This document shows positions 4,067 to 41,280 of a stretch of DNA of 64,000 nucleotides, in pieces. Source of the DNA: Marsupella aquatica (taxonomy: Eukaryota; Plantae; Marchantiophyta); contig OZ316899.1 in assembly GCA_973895155.1 (NCBI GenBank), forward strand, positions 11,275,675 through 11,339,674, in the 5' to 3' direction. The position numbers were made by a program, and so were the translations under genes. Each line of letters begins with the position of its first letter. The first letter of the stretch is position 1. Under the pieces are notes generated by a model. The model saw only the letters and a program-made list of their open reading frames with translations. It ran no database searches and was not told the origin of the DNA.

Positions 4067-4075
4067 TCTTTTACA

Positions 4076-7731: not shown

Positions 7732-7746
7732 CCTCTTAAGTGGTTA

Positions 7747-13921: not shown

Positions 13922-14833
13922 ATTTTTGGCAACCATACTGGGGAATGCCTCTTTGAGGGGTTCCATGAGAAGGAAGTTGCTAGTACTTGCAGCCCGAACC
14001 AAGAAATGGTTGGAGACAGATCAAGAAGTGAGTTCAACAGAAGAAAAACATGAGTGGGAGGAAGGAATTCTGGACACTATTTTATTTTGATAAAGATGTG
14101 GAGCTACCTATTATTACGACACTAAATGAGGAAGAGTACAAGACTTTAGTCAACAAGGAAGCAACGCTAGAAGAGGGGATGTCTGTGAGTAATGGGTAAT
14201 ACCAAAAATCTGAAATTACTGAACAATTTTAAACTTTTTAAGGTGTTTGAACCTGTTATTGTTGCTAAGTACCAAGTAAACCTTGCTCTGACTAACTTTA
14301 CGAGAGTTTACGAGTTTACGAGTATAAGCCATTACAGGTTCACAAGTTGAAGATTTACAATTTTACGGGTTACGCCTTAATGCGTTTACGGTGAAACTTA
14401 CGTTATGGATAAAACAACGCTACGGCTAACTCGGTAACGGGACTTAGCAACGGGAGGGGAACTTCACTCCTGGAAGAAGAAGGGAGCGCAGCATTTAGGC
14501 GCTCCTTCCTGACTACTTTCCGCCCTTGCTCTTTGCCTCCTTCACTCCAAGCAAATCCTTTTCAGCAAGCTAAAGCCACCTTCGAGCTATGGCAGGACTG
14601 GGTGCTGAAGAACAGTACCAGGTTGATGCTCTAGCAGTTCCTAGAGCCTAGCAACTCGCATGCCACAAGCGCCTGATAGTTTCACACATTTACATACCTC
14701 CTTGTAGCACTTAGGATTGGAGCGCTTGCTCAGGATTCCTTGGAATGTCGAGCTCGACTCCTACCTGCAGGATTTTGTAAAAGGGACAATTATCCTTGTT
14801 GAATTCTGACGAACCATACGAGCTCGACCAAGC

Positions 14834-15577
14834 TTGTGGACAGTTGAACAGATCTCCTACGCCTTTGGATGTCCATTGAAAGGGGAGGCATTGTATTCCA
14901 AGAAGAAGGATATATCCACCCCTTACTTCTCAGGAATTCGAAACCTCAAGAATGGATGGAATTTGACACAATGCACATATCCTGAACTAAGAATTCTTTT
15001 GGAATTCTTAGTACCCATTCTCCATCCAAAAAAGCCAACTGTCTACCCTGTGGCCTTGGCTAACACTATTGTAGTTGCTCACAGTGGAGCTATAAAAATA
15101 AATTGGGCCCTACTTCTGTTTAATGTTATGAAGGATCAAGTAAGGAGCTTGAAAGCAGGGAGGACCACTTACTTACAAAATTATCTCTCTCAACTTTATT
15201 ATGCCCATGACTGCTTGCATCTCGAGGAGAGAACAGAAAGAGGCTTACTTATGATCGAACTAGGCATTGAAGAGGAAACTCCCATGGAAGACATAGTACA
15301 GGCCACTCCACTAAATTCGAATGCTCAGGATGTTGAGGAAAATAATGATATTCCTATGGAGGATGCACCATTAGAACCTCCTGCACTCTCTCATGTACAT
15401 TCCATGGAGGTCATTTGTCACCCAACGTATAATTTGAGACCTTCAAGGAGGACCGCCCATTCAGGTCAACTAGAAGCTGAAGGAGTGAGAGCCATCCATC
15501 AGCCACAAGACGATGTTGTTACTCCAACTGATGCTGCCCCTCACAAAACCACCTCATCCACTCCTTCGAAAGCATAA
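14834..15577 (+). pseudogene. Probable transposon accessory ORF (unknown function)
   Basis: 247-aa open frame with a globular N-half (…KINWALLL…YLSQLY) and an acidic disordered tail; degenerate upstream from ~14589. The resemblance to plant retroelement accessory ORFs is from memory only. Confidence 0.4.
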
Positions 15578-15890
15578 TTGAATTAGCAACTCATTAATAA
15601 GTTGATATCTCTTCTCAACTACAGTGATGATGGACTCTATGATGTTGTTAATGATTTAAGAATGGAAGCTGTTAGTTTGAGGTCACCATTCCCTGACCAG
15701 TTAAGTCCTATCAGGATGACCTCTCCCCCAGGAGAATCAGCACCAATGGAATTGTGACTCTCACCCCTGCCATCCAACAGGCCCCTCTCTTAGAATCAAG
15801 TGAACCTGTTCCAGTGACAGAAAGTATCAGTTGTGTAGCTATTGTGGATGATTTGCTAGAGATACTACAGTGTGAACCTCGACAGATAGT

Positions 15891-17760
15891 GTTAAACGCT
15901 AATTCTTCCATACGATTAACTCAACATAACCCTTCTCTATTCGTTCGCTTTTGCATTGACCAATTAATCGTCCAACAACAGGGTAATCTAATAAATCATT
16001 TTCATACTTTGAACCTGTAATTTCCGCTGAATGTTCTTCGATGTCTACTTCTTCTTTCCACTTCCTGGATACAATTGACTCAGTTAATACTAATCCTTCC
16101 CTGTATACATAAATCCACACCATTCACGGTAAGTGAAAATACAAATTGGAATACTCTCTTCCCTTAGCCGACTAGTAATTAGGTGCGAACCAATCGAACA
16201 GATCCACAGTTCAATTGGCCTGAGCCTAATTAGTGAGGAATTCTTCCTATCCTCGTTGTTAGTATTCATGCTTCCAGTGATTGTGATCTGATTAGATCCA
16301 ATCGTCTCATTGATGCTCCCACCAGGAGTTCGATCAATTACTTATGCGACAAAGTAGATCAAGAAAGGCTATTCGTAAGTAGAATGTTATTTAACGATTA
16401 CTTCGTTATGCTGCAGGTGTATGACAATTAGATTGTCATTCTCGAAACACACACACTTCAGCCAGACTCCACTCCTTATAAGTTGTCTGTTGGTTTGATT
16501 CTATAAGGTGTTAATCCTCAACGTGTTCACTCAGAGTGAATTAATCCTCATTCATTATTGCGGTTGGGATATGACCATCTTAACATACTTCTGTCTAATC
16601 CTCGATTTATAACTTCAACAGGTTTGACTTTCTTTATAATTCAGATTGTTTCACTCAATCTTCTCTTTAATTTTTCCTCTCCTCAATTTCTGAATCCATT
16701 CACTCTCAGTTCCTACTCTCGCATTCAATCACCATCTCTTCCTGTAAACTTTCTCAGCAATGTGCTCATCCAAGAACAATTCATCAGGGTGTACCATAAT
16801 GATTTCTTTACTTCTCAACATTGAAATTCTACTCACATCTGAGTAGGGAACACTTAAACAGATCTACTAATCATCTTAAGGAAAGTCTGGCTTTGCCTTT
16901 CAATCAGATTACCTATTGCAAAAGTGACACACTGTTCTACGCTCTTGCTTGCCTTAAATACTATCTTCCGGCAAGATTATCGGTTTCCAACTGCTTGACT
17001 AACAAAATGGTTATCTAACTTACTAATCGAACACAACTGCATAGCAGTTAATAAACTGTTGTTTTGCGGTTACTAAACCGCAATCCGTAGTTCCCAATTG
17101 GTATACTTTGTTTAACTGAGACTATTGCATCAAACATCTTTGTAAGCGATTGGTGGTTGAAGCCGTGGTTTTTGAACTGCTAATGGTTAAGTTTCTCAAT
17201 TCTGATGTCACACGAGATGTCACATGATAGACATTCAATGGATCTTTTGGTTCACTAATGTTCCAAAAAATGATTACTCGTTCAACGGCAATTAGCCTCC
17301 AGCAGTGACGTTGTCATTGATCGAGTTCTTGTCCCAACGTCAGGTTCCACTTTGATGACATGATTCCCCTGCAAAATTCTTCAACAGCTCCTTGAGTAGT
17401 CAACTGTCGTTGGAAAGTTTCACCATTCATGCCAAAAAGCTGCTGCCCCGCTTCATTCCATACTCGGCAGTCTCCCTCCCTAAGGCGGATCATAAATCGG
17501 AACATGGGCTTCCCCTCTCCTACGAGCTTGCAAATATGAGTGCCTTGATCTCTATTGAAAACGTTTGATCGTCCTTCTCCCATTTGCCTTCGTTGCCTTG
17601 CTTTCACCCCCAGAGCACAATCTCTGCCGTCTCCTAACTTGGTATTGCATCCTTCATAGCAAAACCCTAATCGGGTACTACTCCATATAGCAAAAATTGT
17701 CGTGCCTTCTAATGTTAATCTCCCAGCCATCTGACTAAAGCTATTCCTACCAGCCACTGG
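15891..17760 (+). repeat. Right arm of the inverted duplication, degenerate coding-like sequence
   Basis: See left arm; broken ORFs 16558-16824 and 16821-17018. Confidence 0.85.
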
Positions 17761-18641: not shown

Positions 18642-20706
18642 GTGCTCAATCATCTTCACTGTTGTGACGATGAAACCATCGCCTCAGGCATGATTGTATT
18701 CAAGGGAAGCAAGATCTGCAAGGAAGCTTTCTGGAATATTCATGGATTTTCTCGAGGAACATTTTACACAATGTATTCACGATACATGGAGGGGGCAAAA
18801 GTTGGTGTTCATGGGAATGAAGGGACCATCAAGACCAAAGACTATGTTGTGTTGTTCATAGAATTAATTCGAAGTATCCTGCATAAATGTGCAGAACCAA
18901 TGCCACATCTTCACAAAATTGGTGTTTCAGGCAAGCAGGAAGTTGTTTTCAGGGTTCCAATAAGTTTCAGGAGAAAAGATGTTTTTGAAGAGGCTTGCGA
19001 GCTTAACAAAAACCTGGGTATTCACTCGCCCTCTCTCCCAACCTTCTACAAGCTTTTGGATAAATATTTTCCCAATTTCCAATTCCAAGATCGGAGCAAC
19101 TTTGTAAAATGCGATCTCTGCACGACCATTAAAGAAACACTTCGGGGGGAGAAATGGGTGGATAAGATTTTAGAAATCAAGGCAAAGCACAAACGGCATA
19201 TGTTGGAACAACAATCACGCAAGAGTATGTACTATGCAGCAAAACTTGCGGCGAACCAAGAGCCCGACAAATATTTGTCTGTGATTCACGATAAAATGGA
19301 TCAAGCCAAGACCGGAATCCCTAAAATGACTTCTACACTCAAGAGCCAAGGAGGCAAATCAATCCCGCTACCAATGACGCTGACGGGGATGTTAACGCAT
19401 GGACAGGAGCCTGGAATTTATGCACATTTTGCCCTTTCTGGTTTGTGGGCAAGCGATCCTAATTTTACAATCTCTTTGCTTGCAAAGTTATTTCGTGATC
19501 TCGAATCATTTGTGGGAGATAAGACCGGCAATCTAGCTCTCAACACCTCTGACGTCACAGATCCAATCTTTGTATCCCTCTTGGATCGGCGTGCCTTTGA
19601 GGTAGGATACCTCGAAACCAAAAAGATCTCTCTCGCTCACTTCGCAGGGCTTGGTGATAATGTGCCACACAAGAGTCGCGTAGAGCCTTCAACATCGCTA
19701 CCCTTCAAGGCGCTTCTTCGACACCTCCACCTTCAACTTGATAACTCGGGAAAGGATAACAAGAACCAAATAGTTCTGGCTTTCTGTAGCGAGCTTGTTC
19801 TAAGAGGAGTGTTTGAGTCAATAACTCTTCCTTTTTGATGGTGGGGCACACTCATGAGGATGTGGATGCCTTCTTCTCTAGAGTCGGGATAAGGATCTAC
19901 AATCAAGAGCTTACCACATTTTTTGGTTTGATGGCGGAGGTTTGGGAGTGCAAGAAGAAACATCCAGTTCCAAGGTTCATCCGCGAAGTTGCATCTTACA
20001 AAGCTTATGTAGGACCATTTGTCAAAAGGATCCAGGGTCAATCAGCACCTGTTCAATTCTTGTTCTCAATGAAGGAGAATGTCCTAGTCTACCAATATCG
20101 AGAGAAAATTGATACGCCTTGGCTACCGACAAAGGGTCAAACAATTTGGTTGTTTGACTTAGAGAGAAACCAATACAAATTTCCAATTGGAAGTCCTTAT
20201 TCCAAGCGGATGGAGTCTTCTCACAAGCGGGCAAATGACATTTTGGAATACTTGATCCATTATATCTCATGGCTGCAGACTGCATGGAAGGATATTACAT
20301 CGAAGGGATATCGTCTCCGAAGTCCAGAGATTCAATACTGGGAAAACATTGTTTCTGTGTTTCTGGACACACTTTGCTCTCCTTCGCTAGCAGGGGTAGA
20401 TTATCCATTACTTGATGGATTCTGGCCTCAAACGAACCATGGAACTGGGTATTGTCAGGATGGTCAAAACGTGGATACCAACCCAAGCAAAGACAATGGG
20501 GTGATGCATAATCTGGAAAGAGAGCTTCAAGAAGATGAAGAAGAGAGGCAGACAATCTTTGTCGGACACCCTTCTGAGCATGAGAGGTCAAGATTTAGTC
20601 CTCTAGAAGATATTAAAAAGAATACATTTGTTGCATTTTGGCTTGCAAAAGCAATCGATTGTGTCATAAGAGATCCCGATGATGCGCATGTTGGAGAGTT
20701 CCAAGT
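18642..20706 (+). pseudogene. Sola-like (DUF7869-type) DDE transposase, 5' part, frameshifted
   Basis: KCDLC…HKRH, IHDKMDQ, LQLDNSGKDNKN, MVGHTHEDVDAFFS; frameshift in a T-run at ~19835. Confidence 0.7.
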
Positions 20707-21311
20707 TGTCGTGCGCATACATATCGCTACACAACATACATCGCTTGTCACATACATCCAGACATAGTCACACTGCCACATCACAAATACAAGAGAATGG
20801 AATACAAGTGGAACTCATGTCCACACATGTCCAAAACCCACAATAATCTCCATACAATCGGCACAACGATCTCGGTCAACAATACCCCATCGATCCCGCA
20901 CCGATCCGATCACACACGTATGTCAAGCCAACGCACCTTGCACTACTCAAGGAATCCACGTTACACAAGCGGAGCTCATAGCCACCATAGCCACACTCAA
21001 GCTCCTCTCTCTCCAAGGCTCAACATTGAAAGATGACCTTTCAATGCCTCACAAGTGAGAAGTACCCTCTCACACAAACCTGACAGAACCTTATCGGCTC
21101 CAATAGCACTCATACCAAGCGTACATACTCTAATAGCACGATATACTACTACACTACTCAGAATGGTGTGATAGCTGTCGTGCGCATACATATCGCTACA
21201 CAACATACATCGCTTGTCACATACATCCAGACATAGTCACACTGCCACATCACAAATACAAGAGAATGGAATACAAGTGGAACTCATGTCCACACATGTC
21301 CAAAACCCACA
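20707..21311 (-). repeat. 3' terminal block B1(21311-21176)-GC-A2(21173-20844)-B2(20842-20707)
   Basis: B1 and B2 appear identical over 136 bp. A2 differs from A1 by about five transitions and lacks the terminal CA. Confidence 0.92.
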
Positions 21312-21486
21312 ATCGCCCCCCTAGCTGGGAGTAAGGTCCCCTAACTCTAGCTAGCCATGAGTTCTACAAGGTTGATATACACCTTTTTAGGTGTGAAGAT
21401 CAGGAGGTTGGGTGCAAGTGAGCCCCACCGATCACCTACCTGCAATCCATATCTGCCAAGAGAACACAAATGATAACTAGTCGGCT

Positions 21487-23250
21487 TCACCGACACTGAG
21501 GACACAACCATGATCCACTAGGAATCACCTGCAATGGTGGTGTCAAACATGACATGTGCCATCCTCTAGAACACTTATCACAAATCAACATAGTAGCTGC
21601 TCCCTGAGCAGATCCACACAACATACATTTCAAGCCAGCACGAACATGTGCCAAGCTTGGATCTACTGTACCATCAATGTTGGGAAGGTGACATGGTGCA
21701 CAGTTGCGCACATGATCCTTCCAAACCATACCATCGCGTCCCTCCAACATCAGGACACCAGAAGGCAACACTTCACGCACACGTAAGATTGTCCGGCCTG
21801 CGGTCACATCAAGTGTCGTGGGTGCTGTCTGCTGCAAATAAACATAATCACCAGGATGAAATCGTCGAATGCTTGCACGGTAACCTCCTCCACGAATAGT
21901 GACATACCTCAAAGTATCACGATGTTGGGCAATGGCAAGGTTGTCAAAAGCCATGGGCATCACTCTCTGAAATACCCGTGCTCTCTCTGAACACACCTTG
22001 ACCCAAACATCAGGATCATCCAAGTTCACAACTGGTGCAGCATGACGACGAATAGCTGCTGGCAAATCTGACTCTCTACCATAGAGCAAAAAGTAGGGTG
22101 AGAAGAATGCAAGTGATGCTTGCCGACTGAAACGGTAGCCCATAGCTAACCAAGGTAGCTGGAGATCCCAATCTCCCAGATGACCAACCTGCAAGCCATA
22201 CTTACGCAATCCTCTCTTCACAGTTTGCACAACTCTCTCAGCTAATCCATCTGCCTCAGGATGATCACGAGAGGTAGTGCGATGATCAATCAGAGCTTGT
22301 TCACACAAACTCTCAAACTCTCCACGGAACTCAGTTCCCTAATCAGTCAACACCTCAGCTGGTGCTCCAAAATGACTGAGTACACGATCCAAAAATGTAG
22401 CAGCAACTCCTCCACTGGCTTTATCTGGCAACGCCACTAGCTCAATCCACTTGGAGAAGTGCTCCACCATGACCAAAACATACCGATTATGACGTTGGGT
22501 AAGAGGTAATGGACCAGCAAAATCCAAACTCCAACGATATCCCAAACCCATGATCGGTAACGGGTGCAACTGGGGAGTGGGAGCATTAAATGATGCTCTC
22601 ACTCTGTCACATACCACACACTTAGCTATCAACTGCTGGACATGAGTGTGCATACCACGCCACCAATACTGCGTCTGCAGCAAGCTGTAAGTGCGCTTCA
22701 CACCAAAGTGACCCAACTCCTCGTGCGCATGTCGCACCAAATGTACTCGTTGTGATGGTTTTGGTACCACCAACATCCTACCATCATGCAGTACTCTCAA
22801 AAGATGGTTTCCCTCCCATCGAAACCTCTTGGCTCTCTGTAGAACCCTGTCACGTTCCTTGGCATCAACACTGCCAACAATAGAACTATTGCGTAGATAT
22901 TCCAACACTCTCACATCATTGTGAATATCTTGTTGTCCAGAAGTTACCTCACCAACATCCACATCTGAAGACTCATCACCCACTCCATCCAATGAAGTAG
23001 AGTCCACAGATCCACTGTATGCTGGCACCCAACAAAGAAAGGCAGATGCATGCCATCCTGGCACCATCTCCTTATCTGACTCATCATGCCATCTGGCTCT
23101 AGTCTCATCCTGCTGACTGGTACATGGATTGCGGCTTAATCCATCTGCATCCAAGTTCACTTTTCCAGGCCTATGCACCACCTGGAAATCATACTCCTGT
23201 AACAACAATGCCCATCGTGCAAGCTTCCTTGTAAGCTTGTCAGACTCCAT
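21487..23250 (-). pseudogene. pol: Integrase with PHD finger, copy 2 (one internal stop at 22339)
   Basis: HHCC, DDE and PHD motifs as in copy 1. Confidence 0.92.
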
Positions 23251-23253
23251 TAA

Positions 23254-24567
23254 CTACTTAAGAGGCTGATGATCAGTGATCAAGGTGAAGGGGTTACCAA
23301 ACAAGTAGCAACGAAAGTGTGCAACAGCCCACACTGCTGCCAAACACTCTCCCTCATAAGAGCTATACTTAGCCTCTGCTGAATTGTTTGATCTACTGGC
23401 ATAAGCCACAACAAACTCATTCCCCTCATCATCCTTCTGAGTCAGCACTGCTCCAAGTCCTACTCCACTCCAATCAGTGTATAGCTGAAATGGTCTGCCT
23501 GAAATGGGTCTTCTCAAAATAGGGGATGATGCCAACCTTTGCTTCAACTCCTGAAAGGCATGCTCCTGGTCATCACCCCAAATCCATTCCTGATCCAACT
23601 TAGTGAGTATGGTCAAAGGTTTAGCAAGCTGGCTAAATCCTTTAACATACCTCCTGTAGTAGCTCGCCAATCCCAAGAATGCACGAACTCTACTCACATC
23701 AGTAGGACAAGGAATCTGTGTAATGGCCTCCACTTTAGTCTGCTGTACACCCAATCCCCCTGGGTATATGGTGTGGCCCAAATACTCAATCTGGTCTTGG
23801 AAGAACTTACACTTGCTAGGATGGAGCTTCAACCCATGTGCTCTCAATCTCTCCAACACAGTCTGCAAGTGCTGCTGATGTTCTTCCACAGTAGAAGAAT
23901 AGACCAAAATATCATCAATATAACATCTGACAAAATCCAAACCTGCAAGGATTCGATCCATGACTCTCTGGAACTCAGCTAGTGCATTCTTCAACCCAAA
24001 TGGTAAGAATAACCATTGATACAAACGATCTTTGCCATAAGAATCAATCCCCCAGAATGCTATCTTGGACCTGTCAGCATGCCTAATTGGAAGCTGATGG
24101 TGTCCTGCCCTCAGATCCAATGAACTGAAAACCTTTGCATGCCCCACAGCATCAAAGATCTCCTCAGGTGTGGACATGGCATATCGATCAGATTTTGTCT
24201 GGCGATTAATAGGTCTGTAATCACCACACATGCGCCTATCTGTGTAATTGCCATGCACATCCTTCTTGGCTGGCATCACTGTGGCAGATGCATACTCCCC
24301 ATATGAAATCTCCACCAATCCAGCCTCCAACAAATCTTGAGTTCTGCTTTGAATCAGAGCTCTCTCCATGTCACTATAACGGTATGGTCTACAAAAGATT
24401 GGCGCATCACTAGCCAATTCAATCTGAATACCAGGGCCCTTCAATGTCCCCAAATCCTTCATGCTGAATGCAAAACAATTCCAATAACTCTTCAGGAATC
24501 GATGCATGCGACGTCTCTCCTCCCCTGTTAACTTAGGGCCAAGCTGTGGTTCCCAACTCTCCACCAA
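23254..24567 (-). pseudogene. pol: Reverse transcriptase and RNase H, copy 2
   Basis: YIDD and RNase H motifs; TGG>TAG at 23254. Confidence 0.95.
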
Positions 24568-24612
24568 ATCCCTAATATCTCTTTGTAGGGTAGAAGAGAT
24601 AGCCGATGATTG

Positions 24613-26463
24613 CTATTTAGCAGTAGATTGAGCAGTCCCTTCCTGCTCAACAATCTGTCCAGCCGCCAATCCTGTCATAGGTCCATGGACTGTCTGCTCG
24701 CCCCCAGCTATGGTCAATACTGTCTCAGTGGACCGCAAGCTCACCAAGGGACAATCAGTAATTCCAGCAGAGCGCATCCGCAACTGTTCAACTACTCCCA
24801 AGCTAATAATCCAAGTCAAACAATTCAAATCCATTGCTTGACCAAGAACCTGGCGCCGCAAACCCTCTGACACAGAGGCAACTGCAGTGGTGCCAGTCAA
24901 AAATCCCATAGCACGCTCTCTCTCATCAGCAGTAGGCTCCACTAACTGCTGGAGAGCTGTGTCCCATACAAGTCCAGGGCCACCTGCTCTGAATGCATAT
25001 GAAGCAGAGTGGCTGACAAGAGTGGGTAATGCACAACGTGGGCACCCAACTGCATTGACCATTGCCAATGGAGGTCTATCAGGTTGGGTCACACCCTGTG
25101 CACGACGCCCTGGATCCAAAATATTATCCACCACTAAGGCTGGTGAGCGTGGAATGCTGTCAAATGCACGCTTCAGCACCTCACATGGGATCAAATTAGT
25201 CCACCACAAGCGTGGACGATGTGCACGAGAACCCACACGTGCAGCATCCAATAACACAGCAGGTCCAATCCAAGACCTCACCTGGTGAACACAGGCAACA
25301 ATCCGACTACGATCATCACCTAACAATGACACATTCTCCAAAATGTATGCTGGAGACTGTGTCTGATGTAGCTGGAGGTGACGCAGCACCCGTAACATCT
25401 CCCAAAACAATGCAGAGCGTGGATCATGAAGTCCATGCCCAATGCCAGCTCTAGATTGGCCCTGACATGGCCAACCAGCAATCACCAAATCAATGGGGCC
25501 AACACGATGTAGATGATCCGCCCCCAACAATGAAATATCAGTAGGTAGTGCATGCTGATAACCACGAACAGCATCCACTGGCAGCAACTGTGGATATCTA
25601 TCCACCAACATAGCCACATGTCGCAATGAGACCCTCCGTGTTGTCTCATCTGTCTCCACATACAAATAACGACGCACAAGAATTCCTGCCTGAAGAACAG
25701 CAGCCAATCCAGTGCTAATCCCACCAAAAAGATCCAACAAACAAATACCCTCCGGTGGATACTGCCAAGCAATAGGAGTGGTATCCAATGGTGAAAGAGT
25801 CACAGGTCCATCTGCAAGAGACTGCTCTGCTCCTGACTGTGGTGTAAAAGCATGACGCCATGCATCATGTACCAATCGTGCTGCTACCTGTGGCAAGGCT
25901 TGTGCAGTGCCCCACACTGGTGGCACAACACTGCCAACAGGTAATCCTCGCATGATGTGCTCCTCATGAGACTCCTCCAATGGTGGAACATCGGCTGCAT
26001 GCGCATTACCCTCAATCAAATCATCAGGTCCAGCAATTACACCACTGAATGCTGCCAAAGACAATGGTGTGGATTTAGGGCCTCCCATAGGTCCACTAAA
26101 TCTCACTGGCAATTTGCTCAATCGAGCATCTCCTGACTGCCAATCAGGTCTATATGACACTGATTCCTCCCAAAAATCAAGAATAAATCCCATGGGGTAG
26201 AGCACTGTACATCCCACCAACACATCATATGACTCTGCCTTAGTCAGAATAGCTCGCGCCTGTATCTGTGAGCTATCTGTGGTATGACCTTCCTGAATCC
26301 TCAAATCAAGTGGTCTCCTGGTGATATGCTGTGTAGGTGTAGGTCCCCCCAATGAAGTCTGAATGGGAAAGGGACAATCCTCCAAATCCTCTGGACGCAA
26401 TCCCAATCCACGTATGGCAGACTTCCCCAACATCAAGGGCTGAGCACCAGTATCCAGTAACAC
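24613..26463 (-). CDS. Protease fused to DNMT3-like methyltransferase, copy 2
   Basis: A single open frame runs from LLDTGAQ through all DNMT motifs (FGGIS, PCQ, ENV, RPR, ERAMGF, LGQAM). Confidence 0.92.
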   Translation of the reverse strand: MLLDTGAQPLMLGKSAIRGLGLRPEDLEDCPFPIQTSLGGPTPTQHITRRPLDLRIQEGHTTDSSQIQARAILTKAESYDVLVGCTVLYPMGFILDFWEESVSYRPDWQSGDARLSKLPVRFSGPMGGPKSTPLSLAAFSGVIAGPDDLIEGNAHAADVPPLEESHEEHIMRGLPVGSVVPPVWGTAQALPQVAARLVHDAWRHAFTPQSGAEQSLADGPVTLSPLDTTPIAWQYPPEGICLLDLFGGISTGLAAVLQAGILVRRYLYVETDETTRRVSLRHVAMLVDRYPQLLPVDAVRGYQHALPTDISLLGADHLHRVGPIDLVIAGWPCQGQSRAGIGHGLHDPRSALFWEMLRVLRHLQLHQTQSPAYILENVSLLGDDRSRIVACVHQVRSWIGPAVLLDAARVGSRAHRPRLWWTNLIPCEVLKRAFDSIPRSPALVVDNILDPGRRAQGVTQPDRPPLAMVNAVGCPRCALPTLVSHSASYAFRAGGPGLVWDTALQQLVEPTADERERAMGFLTGTTAVASVSEGLRRQVLGQAMDLNCLTWIISLGVVEQLRMRSAGITDCPLVSLRSTETVLTIAGGEQTVHGPMTGLAAGQIVEQEGTAQSTAK

Positions 26464-26502
26464 TCTCTCTGGCTGGTATACTGCTCCAGAAGGCCCAACT
26501 AA

Positions 26503-28599
26503 TCAGAAGATACCACTCCGATTATCCAATGACACAACACTAGGTTTAAACCTAGTCCTCTCAAATGCAGGGCGTGCTGGTAAATCCACCAACCTCGTTG
26601 TTGCTGCATGCCATGTCTCACTAGTAGCAGTAGGTGGCATGGTCTTCACTACATCAACACTGCAAGTTGCTTCTGCATGGGAAGCAACCACTGGAGTGTC
26701 CTCACAGAGTGTAGCTGCCAATCTGAACACTTCTGCAGGACCAACTCCCAAGTTCAGCATGTCTGTCGCTGAAAATAATGGGGTGCGTACTATGGCAATA
26801 GCCGCCCCCAGCAAGGTACCTGTCATCCCTACTGCATCACTACCTGATTCTGCCAACTTACCCACATCAGGGTTTGTCCGAACCGGGTTCATAGAGGCAG
26901 TCTGAACTGTCTCTGACAATGTAAAAGACTGAGGAAGCTTTGTTTGCCGACGTGCATCCCCCCTTTGTGGATCTAACTCCACTACTGCTCCTCGGGGCTC
27001 AAGAACTTTGGCTGCCCCACGTGTCAAAGCTGCTGATGCATCAATATGTGCAGTGCCACACATGAATCCCATGGTGGCAAGGTCTCCATCAGCTCCATAA
27101 GATGTGGAAGGACCATGGGATGTGGAAGGTCCATAGGATGTAGATGCCCCATCACCAGAATTAGGTCTCACCTGGGAACTAGCCATGGCAGCTAGTTGTT
27201 GCTCCAATTGAGCAATCTTAGCATCCTTTGGATCTATGGTTACAGCAGGGGCAGCGTCACCTCCCTGTCTCCCTGCATGTGGCATGCCACGACCACGTCC
27301 ACCACCTCTACCTCCTCCTCTTCCCTGATCATGTGTACGGGATCCTCCTCTCCGTAACTCAGAGTGGAGTGAGAAACACCTATCCTTGGTGTGTCCAGGA
27401 GCTCCACAGTGATCACACTGTCGCTGATCAGGCGCTGATGCTCCCCCTGATCCTCTATGATCTGGACAATATCTCTGTGCATGATCCCCACCACAGGTCC
27501 AACATCCTGAATGCTGTCCAGCATAAGAGGGCACAGGTCTCTGGCTGGTAGACTCTCGTGCAATAGGCTTCTCCCTCTGGCTCTTCCGTGCAGTAGGCTG
27601 TGGTGTGGATGTAGATGCAGCCTTTGGTGCTTCCTTGGAAAATCCGGAAGGCACCACCTTCTCATTCACCATATTGAGCTCAATGCACTCAGAAAGGGTG
27701 AAAACAACTGCTAATGTGGGATCTGCATCCCTAAGCAGAGTGACATCTCTCACTCTGCGTCGCAATTCTCTGTCCAGAATTGCATACCAAAACTGGACTG
27801 CCTGAGCCTCTGTCACTCCCTTGGTGACAGTGATCAATCTGCGCATACGTGTGTATGCCTCACGTAGGCTTTCTCCAGTCTTGCGTTGGAACTCCTGAAG
27901 ACCCTTCAACTTATCAGTTCTCACACCCTGATAGTTCTGCTTCAGTACCTCAAAGAATTCCACCACAGGATTAAATGCTGGCGCAACTCTAGTTCCTGTC
28001 ACAATCACACCGGCAGGAGTAGTGGTGGATGCTGCTGGAGTGCTGCTGATGGATGGTGTGCCACTCTGGCTAGTGCTGCTAGAAGAAGCAGCAGTTGTGG
28101 CAATGGGTTGGGTAGCCGCACTAGTGCCATAGGTGATGGACACGTAATTAGGCGACCAATGCTGCCTCCATGCCTCAATCTCAACCAAATGAGCCTTCCG
28201 AAACTCATGGTAGTCATCCATGGGTGGCCCCTCCAAATGCTGGAATAATCCCTTCCATGTCATGAAAGGGGTAAACAACGTGACATTACGCAATGTCTGC
28301 ATATCGCACCACGTATCAAACTCCTGGATGAAGTCATCCAGATCAATTGTGCCAACTGCACCAGAGTATCGTCGTGGGCCCTTTGTAGCCCCGTACATCT
28401 CGTCCATATCCCACAACAAAGGTGCAACCACCTGATGATGAGGAGAACTGGTCACTGAGTCCTCATCAGAATCACTGTCTGAAGCTGCACTGCTGACTGC
28501 TACCAATGCCGCTGGCCGAAACTGTGCCCCACTCCGAGTGAAACCGGTCCGTCGTCCATCGGGTAATCCAGCAGCACCAGAAGAATCCGTGGTGACCAA
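26503..28599 (-). CDS. gag: gag, copy 2 (in frame with PR-DNMT; premature CGA>TGA at 26503)
   Basis: Two zinc knuckles (CWTCGGDHAQRYC, CDHCGAPGHTKDRC) and an RGG tract; copy 1 has CGA at the stop position. The true start codon is uncertain. Confidence 0.88.
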   Translation of the reverse strand: MVTTDSSGAAGLPDGRRTGFTRSGAQFRPAALVAVSSAASDSDSDEDSVTSSPHHQVVAPLLWDMDEMYGATKGPRRYSGAVGTIDLDDFIQEFDTWCDMQTLRNVTLFTPFMTWKGLFQHLEGPPMDDYHEFRKAHLVEIEAWRQHWSPNYVSITYGTSAATQPIATTAASSSSTSQSGTPSISSTPAASTTTPAGVIVTGTRVAPAFNPVVEFFEVLKQNYQGVRTDKLKGLQEFQRKTGESLREAYTRMRRLITVTKGVTEAQAVQFWYAILDRELRRRVRDVTLLRDADPTLAVVFTLSECIELNMVNEKVVPSGFSKEAPKAASTSTPQPTARKSQREKPIARESTSQRPVPSYAGQHSGCWTCGGDHAQRYCPDHRGSGGASAPDQRQCDHCGAPGHTKDRCFSLHSELRRGGSRTHDQGRGGGRGGGRGRGMPHAGRQGGDAAPAVTIDPKDAKIAQLEQQLAAMASSQVRPNSGDGASTSYGPSTSHGPSTSYGADGDLATMGFMCGTAHIDASAALTRGAAKVLEPRGAVVELDPQRGDARRQTKLPQSFTLSETVQTASMNPVRTNPDVGKLAESGSDAVGMTGTLLGAAIAIVRTPLFSATDMLNLGVGPAEVFRLAATLCEDTPVVASHAEATCSVDVVKTMPPTATSETWHAATTRLVDLPARPAFERTRFKPSVVSLDNRSGIF

Positions 28600-29239
28600 C
28601 CCTAACCTAATCTATGTGCTAACCCTAAGGGCAATCTATCCCTATCAGCACCACAAGCACTCACCATGGTGTGTTGGGCATCACTCCAACATCACCAAGA
28701 GAGAAATACACAGCACACTAGAATGTCCAGTTGCAAACCCGGATCACTCCTATGGAATCAAGCGCCCACACGAAACTAACATGGCGCATAAACAGGAAAC
28801 ATGTGTGAAGAGGATCCAGAAACAAGAATGGATACCATTCAACTCTCCACACAAAAGCAAATGCAAATCAATATGACAATGTGCATAAGGTTCAAGGAAG
28901 AGCCTTCATAATAGGCTTCACAATGGCACTCCAATGTTGTAGATGAGAACCAAGGCAAAATTGGTTCAATCTGTGAGTCTAGATGGACTCATAAGTATCA
29001 AAAACCCTCGAATAGCCTCTGATTTGGCCTAGAATAGGCCTCTAAACAAACCGGGAAGTGTATAAAGCCCCCTGGCTCTTGAATCTAAACAACAAGTTGT
29101 CAAAGCTTGTGTGTACACAAGGTGGGATGAGAACTTGCCAGTTAAGTGCTCGCGGCTGGGAATAGCCCCGGGATGGGTGACCTCCTCGCGCTCGACCTTG
29201 TGCCTCCCCTCGCGCTCACGGCCCGGAATAGCCCCGGGA

Positions 29240-29410
29240 TGGGTGACTTCGCGCTCGCGGTTGGGAGCACTTTTGGGATGGGTGACTTCGCGCTCGCGGT
29301 TGGGAGCACTTTTGGGATGGGTGACTTCGCGCTCGCGGTTGGGAGCACTTTCGGGATGGGTGACCTCACGCGTCGCCTCGCGCGAGCACTTTCGGGATGG
29401 GTGACCTCGT
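29240..29410. repeat. 39-bp CpG-rich tandem repeat in the copy 2 leader
   Basis: GGGTGACTTCGCGCTCGCGGTTGGGAGCACTTTTGGGAT x3 plus variants; fewer units in copy 1 (1927-2095). Confidence 0.85.
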
Positions 29411-30004
29411 GCGCCTCACACCTGTTCCCAAAAATGACTACTTCCTTCACGAAAAGCTCCCGAAAACTGTCGATTTCCTTCATGAAAAACGCAGCCCTTC
29501 CACAGAATTGGCAGCAACTTGATTCAACACCCTTGACCCTCGTTTCTTTCACTGAAACGATGATACCGTCGCACGGGGCATTGGCAGCTCCGTTCCTTCA
29601 GGAAAAGAGCCGTCGCTTCACCTGCGCCTTGCCAACATCGTCCAACAATAGCCGGCAATCAGATCTGAAGCCCCACAGTAGCCGACAATCAGATCTGAAG
29701 CCTCACAGTAGCCGGCAATCGGATCTGAAGCCTCACGGATCGACTTCCACTGTCCAACATCTACTCAACATTCGCTTTCCTCCACGAATCATCAATCGAC
29801 CTCCAACTCAAAACCTGTCACCAATCACAGATCTGTACATCGATCGGGAAGCAGGCCGATCGGACAACAACGATACAGGTCAAGATACCAACAATCTGTT
29901 CGATAACAACACATGATCCGAGCTACCACGAACCGTCGACAACTCAATCAATCGAACTTCTGTCCGCACAGTCCGTACAGCAGATTTTGAATGTGATCTT
30001 TCAA

Positions 30005-30336
30005 TGTAATCTCCATACAATCGGCACAACGATCTCGGTCAACAATACCCCATTGATCCCGCACCGATCCGATCATACACGTATGTCAAGCCAACGCACC
30101 TTGCACTACTCAAGGAATCCACGTTACACAAGCGGAGCTCACAGCCACCATAGCCACACTCAAGCTCCTCTCTCTCCAAGGCTCAACATTGAAAGATGAC
30201 CTTTCAATGCCTCACAAGTGAGAAGTACCCTCTCACACAAACCTGACAGAACCTTATCGGCTCCAATAGCACTCATACCAAGCATACATACTCTAATAGC
30301 ACGATATACTACTACACTACTCAGAATGGTGTGACA
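30005..30336 (-). repeat. Terminal segment A1 of copy 2
   Basis: 332 bp, TGTCAC...GATTACA on the minus strand. Confidence 0.9.
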
Positions 30337-30572
30337 AAGTTGAATGGTGGCGCCCTCTTAATTGCAAGAGTTTGGCAACCGAATCAGAAAGATATCGGGA
30401 CTGCTTTAATTCAAAGCAAATGTGGGAAAGGGATCCCAATTACCTCATTCCCCCAGTCACGAATGATTGGATCCTAGCAACTTCAACCATCACCGGATGG
30501 ACATCAAAAGCAAAAGCAAAGGTAAAAGTTCCAACAAGAGTTTTGGAAAGTCTGAAGGTTTACATTACATAA
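30337..30572 (+). pseudogene. Sola-like transposase, 3' part resumed after the insertion
   Basis: The frame continues VEWWRPLNCKSLATESERY… to a stop at 30572. Confidence 0.75.
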
Positions 30573-34700: not shown

Positions 34701-37700
34701 AATCCTGAGCATTCCCACCCTTGCCTTCTGCGGCATCCTCCTCTGAATCAGACTCAAGGACAAGCTTCTTCCGCCCTTCAGGCTTCTTAGTCTCCTTGGC
34801 CTCCTCCTTCTTACTCTCCTCGCCCTCCGCCTTGGTCTGATTGCCCTGTTGTGTTGAAAGGAGTTTTGACACCACCGAAGCTGCTGACTCACCAAAGTAG
34901 TCATGCGCTTCCATCCCAAATACTAGTCGCCCACAATTATTGGTAGCTTTGTAGATAGCACCAAAGTGGACATTCCAAGAAAATATGATATCGCCGGGAC
35001 TGGTGATGTGCTCTATGATGCATTGCAAGGTTGCAAGCGATAAGGTTCCGGCCAATTCGTCTCTCACTGCATCATCTTCCTTTGTAAAATTGGATAGAGC
35101 ATTGCTCTTTCCTGGGCACAAATCACCAGTAATTGGCTTCATATGTACCTTTGGGAGGGTCACCTCTGTACCCTTCATGGCGAATATATCCAAATGCAGA
35201 TATTGAGCCTGTCACATCATGCAAAATAGATTTGTACTTGTTAGCAACACTGGCAATACTAATTGCTAAACTAATCCGACATCGGTCCTACCTCTCTAAA
35301 CCTAAAAATCCTACCTATCTCAGAGAGGCTCTCCGAGATCCATGCTACCTATCTCAGAGAGGCTCTCCGAGATGGATCCTACCTATCTCAGAGAGGCTCT
35401 CCAAGATGGATCCTACCTATCTCAGAGAGGCTCTCTGAGATCCATGCTACCTATCTCAGATAGGCTCCGAGATCCTACCTATCTCAGAGAGGCTCTCCTA
35501 GATCCATGCTACCTATCTCAGAGAGGCTCTCCGAGATTGATCCTACCTATCTCAGAGAGGCTCTCCGAGATGGATCCTACCTATCTCAGAGAGGCTCTCC
35601 GAGATGGATCCTACCTATCTCAGAGAGGCTCTCCGAGATGGATCCTACCTATCTCAAAGAGGCTCTCCGAGATGGATCCTACCTAACTCAGAGAGGCTCT
35701 TTGAGATGGATCCTACCTATCTCAGAGAGGTTCTCCGAGATCCATGCTACCTATCTCAGAGAGGCTCTCCGAGATGGATCCTACCTATCTCAGAGAGGCT
35801 CTCCGAGATGGATCCTACCTATCTCAGAGAGCCTCTCCGAGATCCATGCTACCTAACTCAGAGAGGCTCTCCGAGATGGATCCTACCTGTGTCAGAGAGG
35901 CTCTCCGAGATCCATGCTACCTAACTCAGAGAGGCTCTTCGAGATGGATCCTACCTATCTCAGAGAGGCTCTCCAAGATCCATGCTACCTAACTCAGAGA
36001 GGCTCTCCGAGATGGATCCTACCTATGTCAAAGAGGCTCTCCGAGATCCATGCTACCTAACTCAGAGAGGCTCTCCGAGATGGATCCTACCTATCTCAGA
36101 GAGGCTCTCCGAGATGGATCCTACCTATCTCAGAGAGCCTCTCCGAGATCAATGTTACCCATAAGGGAGAGGGTGTCCGACATCGTAATTGCGGACACAT
36201 TTTTCAACTATCTCGGAGAGCCTCTCCGAGATGACTTCTATTGAAATGCCAAAATTGAAGTGAACTTACAGCTTTTTTGCTTGACGCCATGTAGCAAGGT
36301 GTGACATTCCAAATGGTGAATGAGTCAATGTGATCCAACTTCTCAGCCCAGTCAATGTGAAGGTACTCAAAGATTGAGCCTGTGTGGGCAAATGAACCAC
36401 TGTGCACAATGCACAGGAAACCGTCGTTTGTGAGTAGAGAGTCTGCCAATGTCGTCGCCACTTCTAGGTCACTGAGCCGAAATCTATTCCACACCGGAAC
36501 ATTATTTTCAGCCTGCGCTATGCGATAATCTGTCCCTAGCTGAACAAAGATCATATCACAACCATGGCCCTTAGGTACACCATCAACTATCCAACCTTGT
36601 TTTCGCAAGCCAGCCAACTTCAATTTCTTACACCAGTCCCGGAATTCCCTCATGAATGGAGGGAGAGGCAACTTTCCTGTGGTTGGCTGATATTTGTCCT
36701 TCAGCCAAGAAGAACACTCTAGTAAGGTCATATGCTCTTTTGCATGGCAAAATCGCAGGGCAGATGTAATAGCATGAGAGGGCCAAGGTACTCCAAGAAT
36801 TTCGCAAAGATCATCCTCCGGAATTTCTGGGGCTTCTGTTGAAACTGGCTTCTTTGTGGGTTCGTCTATCCTCTTGTCGGCTTTCTTCTTTGGCCGACTG
36901 GTTGGCTTACCAGAGATTTGTGGTTTGCTTGGGGTCCCACTCGGGGTCCCGCTTGGGGTTGAAAGGTCAGGCTCCTCCTCCTCCTCATGGCCCTCTGCAT
37001 TGTCCCCGGTGGCCATCCCATCCTCCTCTCCATTGTCCCCACTCGCCGCTTTCTCATCCTCCTCTCCATTGTCCCCACTCACCGCTTTCTCATCCTCCTC
37101 TCCATTGTCCCCGGTCTTTCTTGGCTCCATCTTCTCATCCATCGGACGACGTTTGCTTGAGGTAGACCCTGGGGTTCCAAACTTTTCCTTACTTTTTTCT
37201 GCAGAACAAAGTAAGGAGTTTAGTTATCGTTTTACAATGATACTATCTCGGAGAGGCTCTCAGACATATGTTAGATGTACAATGCAAGCTAGGGTGTAAA
37301 CCTTACCAGGAGTGCCTTGTTCTGAGGTGGTGTCTTCTGATTCCTTTTCTTTCTTCCCCCGAACCTTCTTCCCATCATACTCTGGCTCTCCAAGAGGCAA
37401 AATGGCCTCCAAGTCCAATGCAGCCTTTGTCGACAGCTCAAGATCTCCCAACTTTGAAGGTGCAAAAAGGTTGTCTGGTAGTTTCCCCTCCTTTAGGAGG
37501 TTGGCAGCTTCCTTCTCTTTGGGCGTAATGAACTCATTCCAATCATTGAACTCCATGAACCATGGACAATTTTGTCTCTCCCAGTCTGAAAAGACTCTTG
37601 CTGCTGGCTTCAGCCCATCTGTTGGATACATTGACAGCGGGCCTTTCTCCGTCATCCATGCAGTCAGAGCACTTGGTAACACTTTGAAAGTAGAGGCTCC

Positions 37701-40285: not shown

Positions 40286-40879
40286 CACACAGCTTATAGC
40301 ACACAGAGCGCGGAGAGGGAAAGATCACAAAGCAACTTACGCTCTCCAAGAAATATGAGGTAAATTGCATCCGCACTCGCACTCGCTCGGCCTCAATTGC
40401 TCGCCTTTCAAATGAGGAAAGGCGAGAGACGGCGGGGACTCACCAAAGTAGTCATCATCATTATTAGGCAACGGAAGATCTAGGGGCATCACAACTGAAT
40501 TCACTATCACCGTCACGCAGGTTGAGTCCCATCCAAGCAACGGGAGATCTATGGGACCACTCATTGATTACAAGTGGTAGGGGCCACGGGAGGAAGTTGA
40601 CATGTTAGCAGTTTATTGGCTTATATGTTGTCGTACTCTGATAATGATGAATGCCTAGATTTGACTCATGTCAGAGTCGCAACACTGAAGTACCTGTACA
40701 GATGCTTTCATTATTACTACCCCTTCACGCCATAATGTCCTTGGTACGATTGATTCCAGACCAGATAAGATTTCCTATCATTCCTTGGTATTAATGAGTA
40801 CGATCGTTGAATGACTGGATTTAATTCCAAAAAATATTTAGTACTTGCACGACATGTCAGGCCAGTCTCAAGTTCCAGA

Positions 40880-41280
40880 TTGTCTCCGAGATATGTCACG
40901 CCCCCATGTCAGATAAGCTCTCCACTCTGACATGTAAAGTGGGGACTTAAGTTGGAGAGGCTCTCCGAGATGACATGTAAAGTGGGGACGTAAGTCGGAG
41001 AGGCTCTCCGAGTTGACATGTAAAGTGGGGACGTAAGTCGGAAAGGCTCTCCGAGATGACATGTAAAGTGGGGACGTAAGTCGGAGAGGCTCTCCGAGAT
41101 GACATGTAAAGTGGGGACGTAAGTCGGAGAGGCTCTCCGAGTTGACATGTAAAGTGGGGATGTAAGTCGGAGAGGCTCTCCGAGTTGACATGTAAAGTGG
41201 GGACGTAAGTCGGAGAGGCTCTCCGAGATGACATGTAAAGTGGGGACGTAAGTCGGAGAGGCTCTCCGAGATGACATGTC
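40880..41280. repeat. 43-bp tandem palindrome array
   Basis: GACATGTAAAGTGGGGACGTAAGTCGGAGAGGCTCTCCGAG(A/T)T, about 8-9 units. Confidence 0.95.

Follow-up and report, generated by a model that had tools for sequence, protein, structure and literature searches.

Two copies of one retrotransposon in the window analysed here, a 64,000-nt stretch of Marsupella aquatica (Marchantiophyta; contig OZ316899.1), encode a DDE integrase and have no pair of matching LTRs, which raises the question of how they were inserted. By convention an LTR pair identifies an integrase element, and split direct repeats identify a tyrosine-recombinase retrotransposon, so that standard LTR finders and age estimates based on LTR pairs miss or misfile such a family. 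Copy 1 (979-9842, + strand) has the layout A-body-B and copy 2 (20707-30336, − strand) the layout A-body-B-GC-A-B:

975-978, + strand: copy 1 target-site duplication CTAG, 5′ side (direct reading)
979-1308, + strand: copy 1 repeat A, with the primer binding site (PBS) next to it (1308-1319)
1309-9695, + strand: copy 1 body, gag-pol as in copy 2 and more broken (many stops and frameshifts)
9696-9705, + strand: copy 1 polypurine tract
9706-9842, + strand: copy 1 repeat B, ending CGCACGACA
9843-9846, + strand: copy 1 target-site duplication CTAG, 3′ side (direct reading)
30337-30340, − strand: copy 2 target-site duplication ACTT, 5′ side (direct reading; matches 20703-20706)
30007-30336, − strand: copy 2 repeat A1, 330 nt, starting TGTCAC, 98.5% identical to A2
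21176-21312, − strand: copy 2 repeat B1, 137 nt, ending CGCACGACA, 5′ part of U3
21174-21175, − strand: copy 2 GC spacer between B1 and A2
20844-21173, − strand: copy 2 repeat A2
20707-20843, − strand: copy 2 repeat B2, identical to B1
20703-20706, − strand: copy 2 target-site duplication ACTT, 3′ side (direct reading)

Both copies start with TGTCACACC and end with GCGCACGACA (termini read directly), and perfect 4-bp duplications (CTAG for copy 1, ACTT for copy 2) flank these TGTCA...CGACA ends. The initial annotation had described a split-repeat layout with TG...CA ends and perfect 4-bp target-site duplications, all of which proved real when repeats, termini and duplications were reread in both copies. 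No A or B follows the terminal repeat B of copy 1 (9706-9842). Removal in silico of copy 2 and one duplication lengthens a flanking DUF7869 orf by 76 codons. Within copy 2, B1 and B2 agree at 137/137 positions and A1 and A2 differ by five transitions in 330, near-identity which indicates that, like LTRs, the internal repeats had no differences when the element was inserted. The two copies, both decayed, share 96.8% identity in the body and ~93% in A. In our reading A1 comprises the 3′ part of U3 followed by R and U5. The A|B boundary has a 1-nt ambiguity, the A at 20844 being assignable to either side; comparison across lineages puts it at the start of U3.

The coding region and leader of copy 2 comprise:

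29645-29736, − strand: second tandem array in the leader, 30-nt units
29235-29409, − strand: first tandem array in the 5′ untranslated leader, 39-nt units
21487-28599, − strand: single gag-pol reading frame with four in-frame stops (26503, 24613, 23254, 22339)
first domain of gag-pol, − strand: Gag, two CCHC knuckles
after Gag, − strand: protease (PR), LLDTGAQ
about 24784-25755, − strand: DNMT3-like methyltransferase, between PR and RT
about 23767-24243, − strand: RT (Pfam RVT_1)
about 23257-23580, − strand: RNase H (Pfam RT_RNaseH, RT_RNaseH_2)
about 22342-22758 and onward, − strand: integrase H2C2 plus rve (Pfam Integrase_H2C2, rve)
21493-21627, − strand: PHD finger

The polyprotein order, from gag-pol pieces between stops searched separately with the stops left unmended, is Gag-PR-DNMT3-like methyltransferase-RT-RNaseH-DDE integrase-PHD. 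Pol runs PR-RT-RNaseH-IN, its RT and RNase H are of Gypsy type, and these traits, the DDE integrase (D,D35E residues visible in the translation), the short (4 bp) target duplication and the TGT...ACA ends are all those of Ty3/Gypsy elements, while the identical complete LTRs expected at both ends are missing, the 5′ end carrying only A and the 3′ end B or B-GC-A-B. Pfam domains and the best solved relatives of pol (Ty3 RT 4ol8, E 1e-66; Ty3 Gag-Pol 7q5b; also Ty3 IN) bear out the earlier identification as a DDE-integrase Ty3/Gypsy element. The methyltransferase domain matches PF00145, with motifs I, IV (PCQ) and VI (ENV) visible in the translation, and its best solved relatives are DNMT3A, 3B and 3C; this domain and the PHD finger were absent from the initial annotation.

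The A1-internal-B1-A2-B2 split direct repeats are the layout of PAT-like and Ngaro elements (PMC8969392, PMC5890265) of the DIRS order, including SymbioDIRS-Dnmt3, in which the integrated copy is also a permutation and an internal B-A joint is needed to regenerate the ends. A cycle of that type, with a recombinase acting in trans or unrecognised inserting single-stranded or circular cDNA by site-specific recombination, nevertheless appears very improbable for the present element. DIRS elements encode a tyrosine recombinase and leave the target unduplicated (PMC8969392), whereas here a 4-bp duplication is the rule, targets vary, TG...CA-type ends accompany an intact DDE integrase frame, and PF00589 (tyrosine recombinase) matches none of the orfs searched, those of the window element and those of the Marchantia leader.

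The signals for reverse transcription in copy 2 lie at the inner edges of the repeats:

21313-21322, − strand: polypurine tract (PPT) AGGGGGGCGA, directly upstream of B1 (direct reading)
29996-30007, − strand: putative self-priming PBS ACATTGAAAGAT, adjoining the A1 end with a 1-nt overlap
30187-30209, − strand: hairpin inside A1, left arm CATTGAAAG equal to the PBS core

Because B starts after the PPT and A ends at the self-priming site, the functional LTR is B-GC-A (~470 bp). The initial annotation had bounded the LTR in this way and placed the genomic ends inside it; the conserved PPT indeed adjoins B, the PBS adjoins A, and the termini TGTCA/CGACA are internal to B-GC-A. The PPT is kept as CCAGCTAGGGGGGCG in Marchantia, Calypogeia and Sphagnum, and adjoins B in every copy compared. 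The B-GC-A LTR of the present element is bounded by TG...CA, a feature not conserved in relatives; across lineages the cDNA termini differ and are not of the TG...CA type.

The primer site is predicted to be a Tf1-type self-priming site rather than a tRNA site, a property missed by the initial annotation. In Tf1-type elements RNase H releases the primer from the extreme 5′ end of the transcript. The PBS is a 12-nt perfect complement of A positions 140-151 (chance of one such 12-mer complement ~5e-4 per element), and this pairing is present in the MFE fold. The right arm of the A1 hairpin falls within the primer sequence ATCTTTCAATGT (30197-30186), and the same three-way relation of hairpin arm, primer and PBS is found in Marchantia and Calypogeia with a different sequence in each; across four sequence versions (CATTGAAAG, CTCGAAGAAC, CTTAGAGAAC, CTTGAAGAAC) the PBS pairing (12-13 nt) is kept by compensatory changes. 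Tf1/Sushi and Tcn1 Ty3/Gypsy elements share a PBS that complements their own leader and not a tRNA, a likeness in priming mode. They have conventional LTR pairs, and here the primer stretch also forms one arm of a hairpin, the other arm being a copy of the PBS. Tcn1 self-priming has been predicted in bryophytes (PMC6317226).

The same layout, with the CGACA-GC-TGTCA palindrome and an A|B junction of U5 end and U3 start, was found in Marchantia, Calypogeia, Sphagnum and Closterium, together with 4-bp duplications at the ends. Perfect 4-bp duplications at TGTCA...CGACA flank eight complete copies from four genomes (the window, Marchantia, Calypogeia and a Sphagnum-like contig; 1/256 each by chance), which, at exactly the same termini, excludes chance; in two further copies the duplication matches at 3/4 positions. 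A distant metagenomic lineage has the same palindrome and A|B junction, on contigs without visible flanks. Among four plant/algal genomes and metagenomes, a conventional LTR pair was seen at 0/12 visible 5′ ends and 0/~30 visible 3′ ends. Conventional B-A...B-A members, sought against the earlier claim of a regular life cycle, occurred in none of the copies, and the claim is supported.

Unequal B1×B2 exchange takes place in this family (L004 of Calypogeia reads B-A-B-A-B, to which A-body-B could be the reciprocal outcome), as would be expected if conventional LTR elements had been reshuffled once in the genome, whether through unequal recombination, through nested insertion or by a solo LTR next to them. 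Such an origin is hard to credit, as the whole A...B block is flanked by duplications in eight copies, the breakpoints are the same to the base in four genera and the conventional parent form was seen in none of the copies examined. Less probable again is an assembly artefact: exact 1000-bp duplicated blocks in L001 do look artefactual and metagenome contig L047 follows a cyclic path through its assembly, but the B-A-B block and end duplications recur in independent assemblies (two of Marchantia, Calypogeia, Closterium, several metagenomes and the window).

At the junction of B end, GC and A start (21170-21179, − strand), a putative internal att site, copy 2 reads GACAGCTATC, a single G-to-A change from the ancestral palindrome GACA-GC-TGTC. 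The palindrome is intact in L001, L004, L009, L011, L043, L047 and L051, and is kept from bryophytes to Closterium and to the distant metagenomic lineage, which has a different domain order. Spacer variants GT and AC are single transitions away from GC, pointing to a spacer inherited with the element and not captured from flanking DNA.

In IS3, IS30 and IS911, a DDE enzyme belonging to the integrase superfamily acts on abutted TG...CA ends 2-3 bp apart as its active substrate, and the ends found here, 2 bp apart, resemble IS30 and IS911 circle junctions. Movement as DNA in this manner, the integrase excising a circle and re-inserting it at the B-NN-A junction, is however scarcely probable: those elements lack reverse transcription and take their spacer from flanking DNA, whereas the spacer here is a constant GC not derived from the flanks, and the A|B joint consists of PPT- and PBS-defined cDNA termini, explained by reverse transcription only.

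The A2|B2 joint (20844/20843) is exactly a U5 end joined to a U3 start, as had been proposed for a 2-LTR circle junction, and in five lineages the base before the PBS is fused to the base after GGGGGGCG. Small variants of the joint (+1 T in L043, a 2-nt variant in L020) are expected if end joining remakes it at each insertion. The DDE integrase of foamy virus cuts 2-LTR circles at their palindromic junction, a CA...TG palindrome of abutted ends, generating two processed ends together (Delelis 2005, PMC1180852), as we propose here. In retroviruses, however, it is the joint between the LTRs that forms the palindrome, and the enzyme also accepts linear cDNA ends, whereas here the palindrome lies within the LTR and A|B, where LTR meets LTR, cannot be recognised as an integrase site.

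We consider it probable (roughly 0.6) that this is a Ty3/Gypsy element with functional LTR B-GC-A, whose integrase cuts inside the LTR and whose cDNA termini are joined head to tail. The copies would be circular permutations of their own reverse-transcribed DNA, implying a DDE integrase cut at the palindrome inside the LTR. The integrated copies show the anatomy, the duplications, the conservation and the covariation directly; where the RNA begins and ends, whether cutting precedes joining and whether a circle forms are inferred from them. The RNA would start in A1 and end in A2, minus-strand synthesis would be self-primed as in Tf1 by pairing of the 12-nt stretch within A with the A-adjoining PBS, and plus-strand synthesis would begin at the PPT adjoining B, priming and plus-strand start together giving a normal LTR-body-LTR cDNA whose own termini would not be integrase substrates. 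The integrase ends TGTCA... and ...CGACA would instead lie abutted in each LTR as the palindrome GACA-GC-TGTC. Cutting after each CA, with a 2-bp stagger, would produce two CA-3′OH ends with 5′-GC overhangs at once, and insertion of both would result in the 4-bp duplication. The natural cDNA termini would be joined head to tail as A|B, whether ahead of the cut, in a 2-LTR circle, or afterwards, when the stub is end-joined. A-body-B-GC-A-B would be the replication-competent integrant, retaining a whole LTR at its 3′ side, and A-body-B a by-product of a 1-LTR circle, of cuts in both LTRs or of later B1×B2 deletion.

The 2-LTR circle would be the simplest candidate route. The proposal that copy 2 is an opened circle of this kind stands as far as the joint, which matches, but an internal cut of linear cDNA followed by end joining fits equally. 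Random opening of a 2-LTR circle at its two identical sites should give the mirror form as often as the observed one; A|B-GC-A-body-B was seen at 0/12 visible 5′ ends, compared with six complete copies of the two-LTR type (p ~0.016), which counts against random opening.

This absence fits a process with a built-in direction, such as one that needs no circle at all, in which integrase nicks linear cDNA internally, at the A start of the 5′ LTR and the B end of the 3′ LTR, leaving long 5′ flaps for the host to trim. A-body-B would then be the main integrant, and A-body-B-GC-A-B would derive only from occasional head-to-tail cDNA made by reverse transcriptase template switching. A-body-B is indeed common (5/11 complete copies, 11/19 distinct 3′ ends), roughly as common as the competent form. 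It lacks a 3′ R and U3, however, and could not template the next round; persistence from charophytes to bryophytes requires the B-GC-A-B form as a regular product, and the small A|B indels resemble end joining more than template copying. We therefore regard this alternative as rather unlikely and retain the internal cut with head-to-tail joining.

Tentatively, and at slightly less than even odds, an ancient streptophyte lineage of DDE-integrase elements may have moved its recognition ends into the LTR, with head-to-tail cDNA as an obligatory productive intermediate. If so, Ty3/Gypsy would have converged on DIRS/PAT architecture and IS3/IS30 circle-junction chemistry, and the family would provide a natural exception to the rule by which LTR circles lead nowhere. 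The family does show that integrated copies of permuted form can be sustained by a normal DDE integrase across the long span between charophyte algae and bryophytes.

A split-repeat Gypsy layout was known once before, without explanation, in an alga: KnitGypsy-Dnmt3 of Klebsormidium nitens is a Gypsy element with DIRS-like repeats (de Mendoza 2018, PMC5890265, Fig. 4c legend). It likewise carries a Dnmt3-type methyltransferase inside Gypsy Pol, and its A-coding-B-A-B order, as described in that legend, is that of copy 2; its host is an alga and the present one a bryophyte. The account of KnitGypsy-Dnmt3 (PMC5890265) comes without duplications, internal palindrome, priming site or mechanism. 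No K. nitens protein was among the relatives returned by our searches; Closterium, another charophyte, shares layout and palindrome. The mechanism is now testable, with CGACA-GC-TGTCA as one short conserved site for the bench. Whether circular or head-to-tail cDNA is a productive integration intermediate for integrase elements, and the reason for the element's own DNMT3 and PHD reader, can be addressed in the tractable Marchantia, where pieces of this family are annotated as ordinary 'hypothetical' genes.

The window contains two copies of one 8.9–9.6 kb element in opposite orientations, built around split repeats A and B and each flanked by a perfect 4-bp target site duplication (TSD).

Elements of the two copies and their insertion context.
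979–9842, + strand: copy 1; A, body, B; TSD CTAG
20707–30336, − strand: copy 2; A1 (330 nt), body, B1 (137 nt), GC, A2, B2; TSD ACTT
18642–20706, resuming at 30341–30570, + strand: DUF7869 orf split by copy 2
24784–25755, − strand: DNMT3-like C5 methyltransferase, between protease and RT
21493–21627, − strand: PHD finger, C-terminus of integrase
29235–29409 and 29645–29736, − strand: tandem repeats (39-nt and 30-nt units) in the element leader

On the element strand both copies start with TGTCACACC and end with GCGCACGACA, and the layout, termini and TSDs read in each confirm the split repeats reported in the initial annotation. Copy 2 shows no difference between B1 and B2 and five transitions between A1 and A2, compared with 3% (body) and 7% (A) divergence between the copies, indicating that the internal repeats were made from one template at insertion, as for LTRs. 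When copy 2 and one TSD are removed in silico the DUF7869 frame runs 76 codons further, which fits insertion of the A1 to B2 block as a single unit; this orf is probably part of another mobile element.

The leader between the primer binding site (PBS) and gag is 1.4 kb long. The whole polyprotein lies in one frame (28599 to 21487, minus strand), with four in-frame stops in copy 2 and a more broken frame in copy 1; the broken gag-pol was searched piece by piece, and no mended, consensus or ancestral sequence was made. The domain order is Gag (two CCHC knuckles), aspartic protease, C5 DNA methyltransferase, RT, RNase H and integrase (H2C2 zinc domain and rve core), with the PHD finger at the C-terminal end of the integrase. 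Among solved structures, RT-RNase H is closest to Ty3 (E 1e-66), the integrase to Ty3 and then foamy virus, and the methyltransferase to DNMT3A, 3B and 3C. The domain set and Ty3 as nearest solved relative bear out the original assignment to Gypsy with a DDE integrase, and no tyrosine recombinase was found, either in the window element or in the long leader of the related Marchantia elements. The DNMT3-like and PHD domains were not mentioned in the initial annotation. An exhaustive profile search with the methyltransferase identified 265 cluster representatives with E below 1e-30, and many of these are Gypsy polyproteins of 1.5–3.4 k residues from metagenomes, so elements of this kind are widespread and largely undescribed. 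In metagenomic relatives the methyltransferase occupies another position, between RNase H and integrase.

B is immediately preceded by a polypurine tract (PPT; AGGGGGGCG), which, together with the CCAGCT that comes before it, is shared unchanged by the window, Marchantia, Calypogeia and Sphagnum. The primer site at the end of A is not of the tRNA type: the 12 nt at the end of A, ACATTGAAAGAT, are the perfect complement of A positions 140–151 (chance expectation for one such 12-mer, ~5e-4 per element). The same PBS/primer complementarity, with other sequences, was found in Marchantia (CTCGAAGAAC) and in two Calypogeia lineages (CTTAGAGAAC and CTTGAAGAAC), and in all of these, as in the window, a second copy of the PBS lies shortly before the primer stretch and pairs with it in a hairpin. 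In the minimum-energy fold of an RNA started at the primer stretch, primer pairs with PBS (window and Marchantia); perfect primer hairpins were not seen in the Sphagnum copies, which are too mutated. The four compensated versions amount to covariation, and priming is predicted to be Tf1-type self-priming. Self-priming has also been predicted for bryophyte Tcn1 elements (PMC6317226). As the PPT bounds B and the PBS bounds A, the functional LTR is B-GC-A, in agreement with the initial annotation. An LTR of the form A-B with the body inserted in it is ruled out by the position of the PPT next to B and of the PBS next to A in every lineage.

The nearest relatives of the methyltransferase piece are in liverworts and Sphagnum (Marchantia polymorpha, Calypogeia fissa and Sphagnum; 58–63% identity), with one further match at 79%; this places the window in a bryophyte, most likely a liverwort. 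Relatives were sampled at 13 genomic or metagenomic places via those proteins and on 37 metagenome contigs via the integrase-PHD piece.

Layouts and TSDs of copies with both ends visible (L numbers, retrieved loci; NN, 2-nt spacer).
A-body-B-NN-A-B: window copy 2, ACTT
A-body-B-NN-A-B: Marchantia L001, AAAG; L002, ACCG; L043, GAAG
A-body-B-NN-A-B: Calypogeia L004, AGGT, expanded to B-A-B-A-B
A-body-B-NN-A-B: L022 (same locus as L025), B2 truncated
A-body-B: window copy 1, CTAG
A-body-B: L008, TACA
A-body-B: Marchantia L042, AATT; L044, GTAG/ATAG
A-body-B: Sphagnum L046, GCTT/GCTC

Eight further 3′ ends have B-NN-A or B-NN-A-B (L003, L045, L007, L009, L011, L013, L020 and Closterium L051), and at 11 distinct 3′ ends B is followed by flanking sequence. 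B lies upstream of A at the 5′ end in 0/12 copies and no copy ending in A was seen; conventional LTR pairs are thus not seen in the sampled copies. A predominance of B-A...B-A copies had been named beforehand as contrary evidence; none was seen, which supports a regular life cycle, and an assembly artefact, the other contrary explanation named, is excluded by the number of independent assemblies showing the layout. Two loci (L023 and L024; 58% IN identity) are too decayed for their ends to be read, and in L048 and L050 the sequence stops before the LTR or lacks one.

The Marchantia relatives are ~12 kb long. In M. polymorpha L002 an extra 327-codon orf (5541–6521), also present in L001, directly follows the PBS and encodes a domain of the class I SAM-dependent methyltransferases (Methyltransf_11/25, E 1e-20). 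This orf has no counterpart in the window element and seems to be a host gene acquired by capture. Direct duplications spaced exactly 1000 bp apart in Marchantia scaffolds of GCA_003032435.1 (L001, 15757–17756 and 2547–3846; L044, 3767–5770; L003, 1–1300) are probably assembly or gap-filling artefacts; one of those in L001 repeats part of the 3′ end of the element.

The end of B, the spacer and the start of A read CGACA-GC-TGTCA, with a perfectly palindromic core (GACAGCTGTC). The palindrome is preserved intact in Marchantia, Calypogeia, Sphagnum-like contigs and the zygnematophyte alga Closterium (sp. NIES-53, L051; B-GC-A-B block at 14069–15234, B 248 nt, A 666 nt, CCGACA-GC-TGTCAT; 5′ end masked by a run of N), and also in metagenomic L047, which has a different domain order (RT-RNaseH-DNMT-IN-PHD); the LTR of L047 measures 795 nt and begins directly after the PPT, with the palindrome 207 nt into it. 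Each spacer variant (GT, AC, and a G-to-A change in window copy 2) amounts to a single transition in CHG context; the spacer is therefore passed on with the element and not taken from the flanks. Unlike the palindrome, the cDNA termini are neither conserved nor TG...CA across the family: the U3 start (TTGTGG, AGTTGTG, GTTGGTG, CAAGAG or TGTTTG) and the U5 end (...GATT, ...TTTC, ...GTTT, ...TATCA or ...TGCT) vary, and the TGTGGG...TTACA ends first noted in the window are therefore not a family feature. With one mismatch allowed, the exact 10-mer palindrome is no commoner in the window than in shuffles, and its significance comes from position and conservation, not frequency. A search of viral contigs with the 14-mer around the palindrome gave 78 matches, none with RT or IN, which were discarded as chance matches.

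At the A|B joint the base before the PBS adjoins the base after GGGGGGCG, i.e. U5 end to U3 start with nothing lost. This exact joint was seen in the window, two Marchantia subfamilies, two Calypogeia lineages, L007, L009 and Closterium, with one extra T in L043 and a 2-nt variant in L020. Lying downstream of any transcript ending in A2, the joint has to be created afresh by every insertion; end joining of blunt cDNA termini gives just such a pattern, in which most joints are exact and a few carry small additions. L047 (ENA metagenome contig, 1–16102) was assembled as a cyclic path that runs through LTR, body and LTR and then into the first 55 nt of the LTR again, so the LTR|LTR (A|B) joint is present in reads of a distant lineage, derived from either genomic copies or free circles, both of which fit the assembly.

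The best reading is integration at the internal palindrome, with the natural cDNA ends joined head to tail. Cutting after each CA with a 2-bp stagger would give two CA-3′OH ends with 5′-GC overhangs, as in a pair of 3′-processed retroviral ends. DDE transposases of the IS3/IS30 type act on abutted ends with a 2–3 bp spacer. A biochemical precedent is foamy-virus integrase, which cuts the palindromic 2-LTR junction (PMC1180852). If joining came first, a 2-LTR circle would be opened at the palindrome of the LTR preceding the PBS; if cutting came first, the intasome would hold the cDNA by its A end and the released stub by its B end, the free blunt ends being joined later. The two orders are equally compatible with the integrated copies. 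Of the interpretation originally given (integration from a circle), the architecture, LTR assignment and regularity are supported, and the circle is a plausible but unproven intermediate.

Copies of the A-body-B form could derive from a 1-LTR circle, from linear cDNA cut in both LTRs or by later B1×B2 deletion, and a hairpin-primed route through a one-LTR circle was considered and set aside; B-A-B-A-B in Calypogeia L004 is the reciprocal product of unequal exchange, so such exchange happens. Without a 3′ R, A-body-B is expected to be a dead end. The palindrome occurs twice, in identical form, in a 2-LTR circle, and opening the other one would give the mirror form (A|B-GC-A-body-B), which is absent (0 versus 6 complete two-LTR-type copies, p ~0.016). 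Possibly reverse transcription makes the 5′ LTR double-stranded ~8 kb of synthesis ahead of the 3′ LTR, so that the 5′ site is available first, or the mirror form may collapse faster to A-body-B by recombination between its two 330-nt A repeats. The TSDs, palindrome, self-priming covariation and cDNA-end A|B joint together turn the layout into a testable mechanism.

Split direct repeats have been described as a hallmark of the tyrosine-recombinase DIRS order, which lacks target duplications (PMC8969392). The window element shares the split repeats but differs from DIRS in two of these three criteria (recombinase, absence of TSDs), and differs from Gypsy in one, paired LTRs. Its layout has one published match, KnitGypsy-Dnmt3 of Klebsormidium nitens, described in a figure legend, on which the comparison is based, as having DIRS repeat structure and Gypsy domains (PMC5890265). 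No statement on TSDs, termini, priming or mechanism was found in that paper, its supplement text or searchable later papers; no Gypsy with split repeats beyond de Mendoza 2018 was found in the literature searched; and no K. nitens proteins were among the matches listed in searches able to show them. The window element adds a new member, from a bryophyte, to a kind reported once before, and the 4-bp TSDs, conserved internal palindrome, self-priming covariation and cDNA-end nature of the A|B joint are new relative to the searchable literature.

The window consists almost wholly of repeats and mobile elements, and no part of it resembles human sequence.

Other features of the window.
52673–56445, − strand: Helitron; Helitron_like_N domain and PIF1 helicase in three consecutive orfs
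12033–13922 and 15890–17759: large inverted repeat; arms ~1.9 kb, 82–89% identity, ~2 kb enclosed
35171–36314, 40865–41337, 41427–42176, 44824–45109 and 46986–47489: short satellite arrays; periods 34, 43, 54/107, 37 and 42 nt, respectively

The large inverted repeat may represent either a TIR element or an inverted duplication. Direct repeats flank the Helitron (48194–50086 and 56735–58757; 73–92% identity, spacing ~8.54 kb), as do G+C-rich blocks (50–52 kb and 58–60 kb), and this region may represent a tandem pair of Helitron units.
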